From Camelus ferus (taxonomy: Eukaryota), in NCBI RefSeq assembly GCF_009834535.1, contig NC_045713.1, forward strand, positions 14,694,001-14,758,000: DNA of 64,000 nucleotides, read 5' to 3'. Under the pieces are notes generated by a model that saw only the letters and a list, made by a program, of their open reading frames with translations, searched no databases and was not told where the DNA came from. A program made the position numbers and the translations under genes. Below, one piece after another: positions 58,331-62,215 of this stretch (the first letter of the stretch is position 1; the number at the start of each line of letters is the position of its first letter).

Positions 58331-59030
58331 GTAAGGAGCTTCATGTAATTTTCCTTCTCCTGGGAGCTGTGACAGTGATTTGTTAAGCCAGAATGTGTGA
58401 ACACCTTCTGGGTACCCTGCCCTGTGGACCTACAAGTGCAGCCACATTAGCAATTATGATGCCCCTCAGGTGGCGATAGAATAGATCACGTGGGTGAAGG
58501 TGCAGGTTGGCCTAAGGTACAGAAATCTCCAAACCACAGATTCCTGGTAATAACATCGTGAACTCAGTTTCTTAGAAAGGTCGGATCTGCTTCATCCTCA
58601 TAAAATATAGGAGTTGGGATTAGAAATGGGTTGTCAGTGGCAGGATGTGAAGAGAGTTGTGTACCAGGAAAAAAATAAAAAGTGATTAAAAAAAAAAACC
58701 TGTATCTCCTGCTGTACACTGGAGTCCCTGAGTACGTCATTTTCAAAAACATTTAATCTTTGCCTAACTCTGAACAGTTTATGTCATGAGAGGAAAATAA
58801 AAGGAGTTTTTCCTTTATTAATTTTGCTTATGAAAACTGGGGAACCTGTTTTAGAGACTGGTAGATACTTGGTTTTTATTTACAGTGAGATGTCCATTTT
58901 TGGGCACCACACACACTTGTAAAAGTGTCTCATCTCACCTGAATGAATCGGGATCTTCAGTATTTTAGAAATGAGCTTTGGACGTTCAAAGGCAAGTGAG
59001 AGAAATTTCCTCTGGCTCTTCCATCCACAG

Positions 59031-59122
59031 CTGTGCCTGCTCACCAGATCCTAGCCTCTCCTGAACAGACAAACACCAAAGACTGGACTGTGGCACCTGA
59101 GGTCTTCTTGCCTGAGTCCCAG
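59031..59122 (+). CDS. ZNF75A: ZNF75A linker exon, copy 1 (92 nt)
   Basis: AVPAHQILASPEQTNTKDWTVAPEVFLPESQ; ccacag / gtgagc. Confidence 0.88.
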
Positions 59123-59382
59123 GTGAGCTGTGCTTTCCAGCTTTTTAGGGCTGCCTCCCTGCTGCCCGTGATTCACACTGCCCAGCAGGTGCTCAGAGGT
59201 ATTAGTCAAGGTGTTCCCCAGGACTTTGGGCACCTGTTTACTGATCTATTGCCTCCTTCCTTTCCGCTTAGATTTTAAAAAATCAAGAGGTGTTAATTCC
59301 ATTGTGCTTGGCCTACCATGCAGTTCATGGGCCAGATGGTTCAGCAACATGTATAGAGGCATATATTGAGCTGAAGCCCATT

Positions 59383-59545
59383 NNNNNNNNNNNNNNNNNN
59401 NNNNNNNNNNNNNNNNNNNNNNNNNNNNNNNNNNNNNNNNNNNNNNNNNNNNNNNNNNNNNNNNNNNNNNNNNNNNNNNNNNNNNNNNNNNNNNNNNNNN
59501 NNNNNNNNNNNNNNNNNNNNNNNNNNNNNNNNNNNNNNNNNNNNN
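59383..59545 (+). other. ZNF75A: N-run predicted to hide ZNF75A KRAB-A exon, copy 1
   Basis: Flanks (..cccatt / ataggaattgagtaatc) match the flanks of the visible KRAB-A exon in copy 2 (163 vs 158 nt between them). Confidence 0.65.
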
Positions 59546-59689
59546 ATAGGAATTGAGTAATCTTCATGTTCTTAGCTTACTGGGAATGCACCTGCCGTGA
59601 GAGGGTCTTTGTTCCAGTAGCTGTTTGGTTCTCAACTAGGTGGAGTGGGCAGGGAAAAGTGTATCCAGATCACCAGGGACCTTTTTTCA

Positions 59690-60350
59690 TGTGCACATAC
59701 TCATTCTTTATTCTGAATCTTGATCCCTCCTTCTGTCTTTCCCTCCAGATTTCTCTTATGTTTCTCATCTTCATAAAGGACACCACCGTTCACCCAATAT
59801 TTCAGGTCAGAAAACTTGTGGTCATCCTTTATACCAATCTTGTCATACCCTGCTAGTTCTAATGCAGTACTAGTCCTCTTGTCTCCAGCTTCACAGTGTA
59901 ACCTGAGTCCAGCCAAGTCTCAGCCTCCTGTGCCATTAGCATTGTAGTGTAAGCCAGTGGCATCTCTAACAAGGGCCACCTCAGTACTTTTAACTGGCAC
60001 TCCTGCCACCACTCCTCCCCTCCTACAATCTGTTTTCTACAAAACAGCCAGAGTCTTTTAAAAACATGATCACATCATGACATTTCTTGCATCAAAGCCT
60101 TACTGTGACTTCACACGTTGAGAATAAATCCAGACTCCTTACTGAGGTTCCCAGGACCCTTCTTTTTCTGGCCCCGTCTCACCCCTCTGCACTTACTTCC
60201 TGCCACTCCTGCCCTGCTCAGTTCTCTCTAGCCACACTAGTCTTCTTGCTGTTGAACTTACCAGTCTCATTTATACCTTTGCATTTCCTTTACCTGGCAC
60301 ACTGGACTCTGAGTACTGTATTTTCCAACACCTTTAATTTTTGTCCAACT
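59690..60350 (-). mobile_element. L2 fragment in duplication copy 1
   Basis: aaaacatgatcacatcatgacatttcttgcatcaaagcc..gaataaatccagactccttactgagg. Confidence 0.65.
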
Positions 60351-60625
60351 AGAACTATTCATATCATGTAAGGAAAAAACCAGGATTTCCTTTTATCAAC
60401 TTCACTGGTGAAAACTGAGGAGCGTCAACTGAGGAACTTGTTGGAGGAGCTAGTAGAAACTTGATTCTTATTTAAAATGAGAAAGCCACTTCTAGGTACC
60501 AGGTAACACTTGTGAAGATATCCCATCTCTACTGAAAGAATCAGGATCGTCTACAATTTAGAAATGAGCCTAGAATAATCAAAGGCAGAAGGGAGAGAAA
60601 TTTCCTCTGGCTGTTCCACCCGCAG

Positions 60626-60717
60626 CTGTGCCTGCTCACCAGATCCTAGCCTCTCCTGAGCAGACAGACACCAAGGACTGGACTGTGGCACCTGAGCTCT
60701 TCTTGCCTGAGTCCCAG
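60626..60717 (+). CDS. ZNF75A: ZNF75A linker exon, copy 2 (92 nt)
   Basis: AVPAHQILASPEQTDTKDWTVAPELFLPESQ; ccgcag / gtgagc; 4 nt differ from copy 1. Confidence 0.8.
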
Positions 60718-61006
60718 GTGAGCTGTGCTTGCCAGCTCTTCAGGGCTGCCTTTCCCTGCTGTGTGTGACCCATACTGCCCAGCAGATGCTCAGAGGCATG
60801 TAGGCCCAGATGCTCCCTTTGGGGAACTGGGCACCTCCCAGGGTATTTGCTGATCCATTGCTTCCTTCCTTTCTGCCTTCTCACTTTAAAAAAATGAACT
60901 GCTATTAATTCCTTTAGTGACTGGCCTACCATGCAGTTCATGGCAGAGAATGAAGGACCTCTTCTGTATTAGCAAGTACTGAGCCAAAACCCATTCTCCT
61001 CTTTAG

Positions 61007-61133
61007 AGCTTGTTAACATTTGAAGAAGTGGCCATGTATTTTTCCCAGGAAGAATGGGAGTTACTGGATCCCATTCAGAACGCCCTCTGTAGTGATGTAA
61101 TGCAAGAAAACTATGAGACTGTCATCTCTCTAG
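61007..61133 (+). CDS. ZNF75A: ZNF75A KRAB-A exon, copy 2 (127 nt)
   Basis: [42 protein letters not shown]; ctttag / gtaaag. Confidence 0.88.
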
Positions 61134-61309
61134 GTAAAGATTCTCCCCTTTGCATAGGAGTTGAGTAATCTGTCATGTTCTTAAGTTACTGGGAATGCAC
61201 CTGCCGTGAGTCTTTGTTCCAGTAGCTGTTTGGTTCTCAACTAGGTGGTGTGGGCAGGTAAAAGGTGTATCCAGATCACCAAAGTCCTTTATCCAAATAC
61301 ACATTACTT

Positions 61310-62215
61310 ATCCTATATAGAATTGATGTCTTCTTCCCAACAAACTTGTTCTTACATCTCTCTCATCTCCATAAGAGGTGTCCCCACTCATCCAATTGCT
61401 CAGAGCAAGAAACAGTCATCCTTTCCCTCGATCTTGCCGTAACACCCCACGAAATCTAACACAATGCTCTTGGCTCCACCTTCACAGTATAGCCTGTGCA
61501 GTCTGATTGCATCTCAACCTCTTGTGCTGTTAGCATCCTGGCCTTAGCCAGCACTGTCTCTATCGAAGACCACCTCAGTACTTTCTGACTGCCACTCCGA
61601 GCCACCACACTGGCTCTCCCAGTCTCTTTTCTGTGTGGCAGCCGGAGTTTTAAAAACCTGATCAGATCATGACTTTTTCTGTTTCACAACCTAGAGATAA
61701 TTTCTCAAGAAGTTCAGAATATATCCAAATTCCTTACTGAGGTATCCAGAACCTTCTAAGATCTGGTTACTCCTCACCAACCTGCTGTTGTCTCTGGCCA
61801 CTTGTGCCCTTGCTCAGTCCTCTTTATTTACACTGGTCATTTTGTTGTTTCAGGAACTTGCCTTGCTCATTTCTTCTTTCCCTTTCCCTCTACCTGGCAT
61901 ACTTGTCAGCCACATGGCAAAACTCACTTTAGGGTTCTACTCAGATACCACTTTCTCAAAGAGGCTTGTATAACCTTATCTAAAATAGCTTCACAGGAGC
62001 AGATTTTTAAATGCTCTCTTACCCAGCTTTAGTTTTCTTCAAAACCTTGATCACTTCCTGACATTTTGTTTATTGATGTTTATTGTTTCACTCTGCACTG
62101 GAAGATAGCTCCATGAGCTCAGGGGACTTGGCTTATTAAGCACAGTATCTCTAGCACATAGAGAGTGCCCAGAGCACCATCACCACTCAGTATAAATTTA
62201 TTAAATGACTGGGTG
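61310..62215 (-). mobile_element. L2 fragment in duplication copy 2, including its 3' end
   Basis: Paralogous to 59690-60350; ends gaagatagctccatgagctcaggggacttgg..gcacatagagagtgccc..tattaaatga. Confidence 0.65.

Follow-up and report, generated by a model that had tools for sequence, protein, structure and literature searches.

Tandem duplication of a frame-neutral linker and KRAB-A exon pair in camelid ZNF75A: an ancient, conversion-maintained arrangement with a possibly optional second KRAB-A

Introduction

KRAB zinc-finger proteins are usually viewed as one DNA-binding array joined to one effector box. Where tandem duplication places homologous in-frame exons next to each other, alternative protein forms result, and concerted evolution driven by gene conversion is common in such exon pairs. 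Here we describe an arrangement of this kind in the ZNF75A gene of Camelus ferus, in which a 92-nucleotide (nt) linker exon and a 127-nt KRAB-A exon are duplicated together. The gene lies in a stretch of 64,000 nt (contig NC_045713.1, positions 14,694,001 to 14,758,000 of the forward strand), which is referred to below as the window; unless another locus is named, coordinates are those of the window. Each linker/KRAB-A exon pair is called a module and is numbered in the direction of transcription. Compared with tandem exon duplication in general, ZNF75A differs in that an exon pair was duplicated as one unit, and in that gene models suggest cassette inclusion (one or two copies) as opposed to a mutually exclusive choice.

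The closest described proteins outside the ZNF75 group are human ZFP28 and ZNF333, which have two KRABs each, one standard and one variant (PMC6745500); in ZFP28, KRAB_1 represses and KRAB_2 activates (10.1101/2020.09.09.288324). Two-module ZNF75A likewise places two KRAB-A boxes upstream of one zinc-finger array, although ZFP28 and ZNF333 lack a SCAN domain. ZNF75D, a paralogue of ZNF75A, has the same SCAN-KRAB-C2H2 architecture but is a separate locus; it recognizes nearly the same DNA motif, shares targets with ZNF75A, and its KRAB is rated a confident TRIM28 binder (10.1101/2025.03.03.638093). RefSeq names alone do not assign orthology within this group, since the names in hit lists mix 75A, 75D and 75C.

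Nearest of all are two-module models of ZNF75A itself in other mammals (Macaca nemestrina XP_070940098.1, 610 amino acids (aa); Phacochoerus africanus isoform X1, 612 aa; Pteropus vampyrus X1, 613 aa; Equus przewalskii X2, 609 aa). They concern the same gene and the same exon pair, carry the same 73-codon module in frame between linker and KRAB-B, and share the unit borders found here at the DNA level. They differ from the camelid case in two respects: two-module isoforms of other mammals exist as computed database models, whereas camelids are modelled only with one module (a GenBank dromedary model, P0003, apart), and the camelid copy-2 KRAB-A is more diverged than most. The duplication is thus already visible in RefSeq isoforms of dozens of species; no description of it was found among titles and passages of the literature that names ZNF75A.

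Results

A sensitive self-BLAST and a repeat search of positions 58400-62400 revealed a direct repeat of ~1.6 kb in head-to-tail arrangement. By self-BLAST, copy 1 of the duplicated unit spans 58716-60303 and copy 2 spans 60299-61903. Positions 58716-59382 align with 60299-60995 (74.6% identity over 704 columns) and positions 59546-60303 with 61154-61903 (70.7% over 781 columns), and nine colinear direct-repeat families have start-to-start spacings of 1592-1609 nt. Because copy 2 begins where copy 1 ends, this is a head-to-tail tandem duplication of ~1.6 kb. The unit borders (58705-58744, 60290-60325 and 61890-61918) share a short imperfect direct repeat, CCTG..(C/T)A..ACTGG/ACTTG, which is weak and was found by eye; it could be what remains of microhomology at the breakpoints.

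Each unit holds, on the plus strand, a 92-nt linker exon with an open frame running from phase 1 to phase 0 between AG and GT (92a, 59031-59122; 92b, 60626-60717). The two exons differ at 4 of 92 nt: two differences are synonymous, and the others change N to D and V to L in the 30-residue peptides. The KRAB-A exon of copy 2 (KRAB-A2; 61007-61133, plus strand, 127 nt, phase 0 to 1) is likewise bounded by AG and GT, and its positions 61007-61132 match the Pfam KRAB profile PF01352 at 74.4 bits (cut-off 20.4) over profile positions 2-41 of 42. Every one of the six module splice sites that the window shows is AG or GT. An exon pair adds 219 nt, or 73 codons, and therefore either pair can be spliced in or out with the frame kept.

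At the expected place of the copy-1 KRAB-A exon the window has a run of N (59383-59545). Ten such runs of 131-308 nt each occur in the window, one of them within the zinc-finger exon, and for this reason they look like deliberate masks. The flanks of this run are colinear with copy 2, 59382 pairing with 60995 and 59546 with 61154, and its 163 nt compare with 158 nt in the homologous part of copy 2 (11 intron, 127 exon and 20 intron). With the two copies thus differing here by no more than 5 nt in length, the masked stretch has the size and place for a 127-nt KRAB-A exon with its splice sites, the intactness of which is unreadable from the window. A protein search with the KRAB-A2 peptide identified dromedary and alpaca models that span the masked stretch (P0003, P0245 and P0291). 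The 537-aa dromedary model places 43 residues between its 92a and KRAB-B peptides. When KRAB-A2 is compared with the 537-aa models of dromedary and alpaca, the best match in each is 37 of 42 residues. The hidden copy-1 exon is thus modelled as an open 127-nt exon in close relatives.

The remainder of the gene conforms to a SCAN-KRAB-C2H2 protein, with SCAN, linker, KRAB-A, KRAB-B and ~5 C2H2 fingers in this order on one strand and with best matches named ZNF75A. The first coding exon (56585-56995, plus strand) contains the start codon and SCAN in an open reading frame (ORF) of 137 codons that ends in phase 0, and scores 134.2 bits against Pfam SCAN. Its product is identical to P0290 (143 aa), the annotated product of the window's own genome, which falls into one cluster with the ZNF75A proteins of Camelus dromedarius and Vicugna pacos; 135 of 137 residues are identical in dromedary and 132 of 137 in alpaca. 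At 56955-56965 this otherwise near-identical exon reads HFTRE, and dromedary proteins read HLQRE, two adjacent differences. A 196-nt linker exon follows (58135-58330, plus strand, phase 0 to 1; AG at 58133-58134, GT at 58331-58332), whose codons at 58147-58329 encode the same residues as the dromedary RefSeq protein P0245. Downstream of the modules are the 108-nt KRAB-B exon (63005-63112, plus strand, phase 1 to 1), identical as a peptide in dromedary and alpaca RefSeq proteins, and the last exon (63303-63982, plus strand), an ORF with spacer, C2H2 fingers and stop. Positions 63568-63875 of the latter are masked, and 63878-63979 match Pfam zf-C2H2 at 27.1 bits. Dromedary ZNF75A isoform X1 contains the exon-3, 92a and KRAB-B peptides unchanged. 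With one module, the coding parts sum to 411+196+92+127+108+677 = 1611 nt, or 537 codons; a second module adds 219 nt and gives 1830 nt, or 610 codons. An earlier sequence-only reading of the window had proposed a SCAN-KRAB-C2H2 gene, ZNF75A, with a ~1.6-kb tandem repeat of a frame-symmetric linker and KRAB-A module (visible in copy 2, masked in copy 1), canonical sites at every visible splice junction and products of 537 or 610 aa, and in each of these points the present analysis agrees with it.

The distribution of the duplication among mammals was examined in protein models and in DNA. A search with KRAB-A2 of 1.84 billion representative proteins yielded ZNF75A-like proteins that matched in two stretches, and a second search with a full-length mink protein gave the 120 best orthologue models, in which modules were counted with a 72-residue module profile. 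At least 35 genera from eight orders of mammals have two-module ZNF75A models in RefSeq or GenBank, so that what the sequence-only reading had seen in one genome recurs widely among orthologues, including, at the DNA level, five other species; the feature is ordinary for ZNF75A and not peculiar to this genome. Among the 120 best models, apes, rodents, Bos, Sus, elephant, tenrec, armadillo, shrews, moles and camelids have one module. By the profile, two modules are present in Macaca, many bats, many carnivores, Equus, Diceros, Manis, Erinaceus, Ochotona, Moschus, Phacochoerus, Orcinus and Pseudorca; Papio, Chlorocebus, Bubalus, Ovis, Bos javanicus, Bison and Muntiacus join them by unscanned length in cluster lists only (~584-638 aa). 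Models with three or four modules are found in some felids, Lutra, Meles, Halichoerus and Equus, of which the three-module models and the four-module models of Lynx and Neofelis are unverified. Isoform models of both ~537 and ~610 aa exist in Rhinolophus, Pteropus, Phacochoerus and Equus.

DNA was compared at the loci of warthog, Przewalski horse, tiger, pig-tailed macaque, large flying fox and yellow-bellied marmot, with no Afrotherian or Xenarthran among them. In five of these six, all but marmot, the main gene has two modules at a spacing of 1557-2100 nt. Measured from the start of 92a, the borders of the unit are at about -300 to -315 and at +1244 to +1298 in five of the six genomes with two modules, camelid and macaque included; the exception is warthog, in which detectable 5′ homology starts at -178. 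All 17 module copies that were read have AG/GT at every visible site and open frames, the KRAB-A exon being masked in one.

A second, ZNF75A-like paralogue was observed downstream of the main gene in horse (locus L002:72017-79094, ~70 kb away), tiger (L003:41707-47490, ~40 kb) and warthog (L001:23160-30036, 12 kb). It has two modules in horse, two in tiger, and one, with a decayed SCAN, in warthog. Models that would place four KRAB modules in a single gene (tiger X1, 718 aa; horse X1, 727 aa) were rejected as such, as they splice across two tandem two-module paralogues. The marmot locus (L006:4532-5551) has a single module, and the intron between its 92-nt exon and KRAB-A is 804 nt long vs. 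260-370 nt elsewhere; in trees built from the introns, its flanking sequence falls with macaque copy 1 (support 93/94 and 87/49). Loss of copy 2, or an insertion, could produce this pattern.

The age of the duplication was inferred from a tree restricted to the distal parts of the unit (964 columns). Copy 1 of camelid, warthog, horse, tiger and flying fox forms one Laurasiatherian clade (support 95/96) and copy 2 forms another (99/96), with camelid paired with warthog inside both (100/98 for copy 1, 99/99 for copy 2). An approximately unbiased (AU) test rejected camelid copies 1 and 2 as sisters (p 0.0015), and separate U and I2 trees agree. Because the sequences group by copy across Laurasiatheria, the duplication is older than the divergence of bats, carnivores, perissodactyls and cetartiodactyls (Scrotifera). 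Both macaque copies and the marmot sequence branch outside the two Laurasiatherian clades (97/99). A single boreoeutherian origin was rejected on the tree alone, the AU test against a clade of all copies 2 including macaque giving p 0.014, and macaque copies 1 and 2 as sisters were not rejected (AU p 0.49). An independent primate event was not accepted either, as the macaque unit borders coincide with the Laurasiatherian ones. The primate copies reflect either one older event, after which the whole unit was converted in a single stem lineage, or a second use of the same borders.

Distances within and between genomes, given as Kimura two-parameter (K2P) values, reveal a mosaic of converted patches in old, diverged introns. 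In the distal parts of the unit, copies 1 and 2 of the same genome differ by 0.27-0.43, with 0.27-0.35 for the camelid introns. Close to the exons, two patches depart from this level. The one around 92a (58994-59156, partner 60589-60751) shows 93% identity over 163 nt vs. ~75% in the neighbouring intron, and the camelid 92-nt exons differ by 0.045 between copies vs. ~0.11 between species. The other begins just 3′ of KRAB-A (59546-59665, partner 61154-61273), where 11 of 122 columns differ. Over the first ~100 nt of this stretch the camelid copies are separated by 0.043, compared to averages of 0.31-0.34 between species and 0.23-0.30 between camelid and the other species. Since it is alike within the genome and unlike between species, it is a recent conversion tract; the alternative of a constrained splicing element was rejected, as the stretch is not conserved between species. 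Intron I1, which lies between the two exons (286 nt in horse), shows the same in other lineages, with 0.011 between copies 1 and 2 in horse and in flying fox vs. 0.25-0.27 between species. Exon-proximal tracts are thus more alike within than between genomes, as in tandem exon duplications that undergo concerted evolution.

Selection on the exons was measured as the ratio of nonsynonymous to synonymous change (dN/dS), which for pooled KRAB-A exons is 0.20 in copy 1 and 0.44 in copy 2, and for pooled linker exons 0.54 and 0.42. Between species, the KRAB-A exons differ by a K2P of 0.054 (copy 1) and 0.094 (copy 2) and the 92-nt exons by 0.115 and 0.133, and introns by 0.25-0.36. These values indicate that copy 2 is under purifying selection that is weaker than in copy 1 but real, its apparent conservation being to some extent inflated by copy-1 conversion.

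Relative to the consensus of the 16 other copies, camelid KRAB-A2 has three synonymous and four nonsynonymous changes. The latter are T23I, K25N, Y28C and N29S (window positions 61074, 61081, 61089-61090 and 61092), at sites where 14, 14, 15 and 16, respectively, of the 16 other copies are uniform. To place them on a structure, KRAB-A2 was aligned with HMMER, free of gaps, to the KRAB of ZNF93 in the KRAB-KAP1 crystal structure (PDB 7z36, chain D). Passages of the ZNF93 report name D8, V9, I11, F13, E17, W18, L21, Y29, V32, M33, E35 and N36 as KAP1 contacts or as required for silencing, Tyr29 being a KAP1 contact that silencing requires (PMC9753469). KRAB-A2 reads E, V, M, F, E, W, L, C, V, M, E and N at these twelve sites. 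Nine are identical, two are conservative replacements (D to E and I to M), and Cys at KRAB-A2 position 28 takes the place of Tyr29, so that the box departs from the standard for KAP1/TRIM28 binding. The D-to-E replacement is common to all 17 copies read, and the site of ZNF93 I11 is M, I or V among them; Tyr is kept at the Tyr29-equivalent in 15 of the 16 other module copies. The same Tyr-to-Cys change as in camelid copy 2 (61089-61090) was observed in copy 2 of flying fox (L005:6322-6447). It could represent an old state of copy 2 that conversion has overwritten elsewhere, or a coincidence or convergence.

With the Tyr29-equivalent contact lost, KRAB-A2 would not simply be a second standard repressor, and we infer from the alignment that its binding to KAP1 is weakened. 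The sequence-only reading had considered a double or switchable KRAB repressor, in which alternative splicing could set KRAB number or identity. One- and two-module isoform models in many mammals make this proposal plausible at the level of the gene family. Its premise that SCAN-KRAB proteins normally recruit TRIM28 proved too broad, as only seven human SCAN zinc-finger proteins, ZNF75D included, are rated TRIM28 binders (10.1101/2025.03.03.638093).

Evidence on the use of module 2 in camelids comes from gene models. The RefSeq models of dromedary and alpaca are both 537 aa long, and their linker corresponds to 92a, the window's 92a peptide being found exactly in the former and at 29 of 30 residues in the latter. 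As 92b and KRAB-A2 are absent from both, these models skip module 2. A query composed of the 92b, KRAB-A2 and KRAB-B peptides retrieved no camelid match from the protein collection. The GenBank dromedary model P0003 contains both modules and reads through the introns after exon 3 and after KRAB-B. Camelid RNA sequencing runs contain words from the region, in shares that do not separate spliced from unspliced RNA.

Several observations were made elsewhere in and around the gene. Upstream of ZNF75A, on the minus strand, are TIGD7-like ORFs: at 49782-51238 two overlapping ORFs of 201 and 210 aa, split between frames, resemble a transposase of the Tigger/CENP-B type. Between the TIGD7-like gene and the SCAN exon, a G+C-rich stretch (54565-55590) with long spurious ORFs on both strands is probably a shared CpG-island promoter together with the 5′ exon region. 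The intron that precedes the KRAB-B exon contains the tail of what resembles a tRNA-derived short interspersed element (62654-62720). The tail directly follows an N run (62523-62653), which for this reason probably covers a repeat and not an exon.

Discussion

On a narrow balance of probability, we read camelid ZNF75A as carrying an ancient, frame-neutral exon-pair duplication that conversion has maintained, in which module 1 is regularly used and module 2 offers an optional, diverged second KRAB-A. The sequence comparisons establish the duplication with its age, the conversion and the constraint. A 1.6-kb piece with the 92-nt linker exon and the 127-nt KRAB-A exon was duplicated in tandem no later than in the common ancestor of bats, carnivores, perissodactyls and cetartiodactyls. 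Short conversion tracts have since copied the exons and their immediate flanks repeatedly from one unit to the other while the remaining introns drifted apart, and in all genomes examined both pairs retain AG/GT and open frames. In camelids, module 1 would be constitutive and module 2, intact and less constrained, would serve as an optional cassette, a use in splicing that we infer; if included, it would add a variant KRAB with a drifted KAP1/TRIM28 consensus as opposed to a second standard KRAB.

Several points weigh against optional use. Among 5.8 billion proteins, the sole camelid product with KRAB-A2 is the ab initio GenBank model P0003, and this lone model fits rare or no use of module 2 as well as it fits optional use. 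For other mammals, the RefSeq isoforms are computed models. A module that is not used could still show intact splice sites and frames through gene conversion alone, and the changes in camelid KRAB-A2 (four nonsynonymous, three synonymous) are too few to separate relaxed from purifying selection. The main alternative is that camelid module 2 is a silent relic, never or almost never spliced in, which looks intact through conversion from module 1. We consider this possible, if doubtful. It would account for the RefSeq models that skip module 2, for the lack of any camelid KRAB-A2 protein found besides an ab initio model, for conversion patches that cover exactly the exon-proximal parts, and for four changes at near-invariant sites, the Tyr29-equivalent among them. 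It sits poorly, however, with purifying selection on copy-2 exons across species (KRAB-A dN/dS 0.44, exon K2P 0.09 vs. 0.25-0.35 in introns), with copy-2 exons that are open and flanked by AG/GT in all six genomes, and with two-module isoforms modelled in so many genera. Moreover, conversion has left the differing central part of camelid KRAB-A2 in place, and yet this part has acquired no stop or frameshift.

If both modules were instead always included, the main camelid protein would be a 610-aa SCAN-KRABA-KRABA-KRABB-ZF. The frames permit this, in many mammals a two-module form is the longest RefSeq isoform, and P0003 contains both modules; however, RefSeq isoform X1 has one module in dromedary as well as in alpaca, P0003 is a poor model that reads through introns, and the two-module species usually have one-module models too (Rhinolophus, Pteropus, Phacochoerus and Equus). 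We regard a constitutive double KRAB as improbable. That a single unit was written twice in the assembly had been thought unlikely by the sequence-only reading, and although an N run does lie inside copy 1, this explanation is refuted: the introns of the two copies differ by a K2P of 0.27-0.35 and by many indels, and warthog, horse, tiger and flying fox have a separate orthologue of each copy.

A stronger form of optional use would make ZNF75A a maintained KRAB switch, in which alternative inclusion of module 2 adds a variant KRAB-A to a fixed SCAN/zinc-finger scaffold and alters cofactor recruitment, with selection keeping the two boxes different in spite of conversion. We think this unlikely on present evidence. 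If it were true, inclusion would change the number of KAP1 dimers or would present a non-repressive or activating surface, as with KRAB_2 of ZFP28, and the Tyr-to-Cys change of camelid and flying fox would go back to an old second KRAB with a function of its own.

For the annotation of mammalian genomes, the cassette means that the lengths of ~537 and ~610 aa under which "ZNF75A" is listed across species reflect one or two modules, and that models with three or four KRABs need care, those of tiger X1 and horse X1 being read-throughs of neighbouring paralogues. The locus is also a clean example of mosaic concerted evolution, with converted exon-proximal patches set in anciently diverged introns. 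The arrangement has been kept in ZNF75A since before the radiation of several mammalian orders. If the same zinc-finger array can carry one box or two, ZNF75A would amount to a natural experiment in which KRAB dosage and identity vary, the more so should the second box have left the KAP1-binding consensus.

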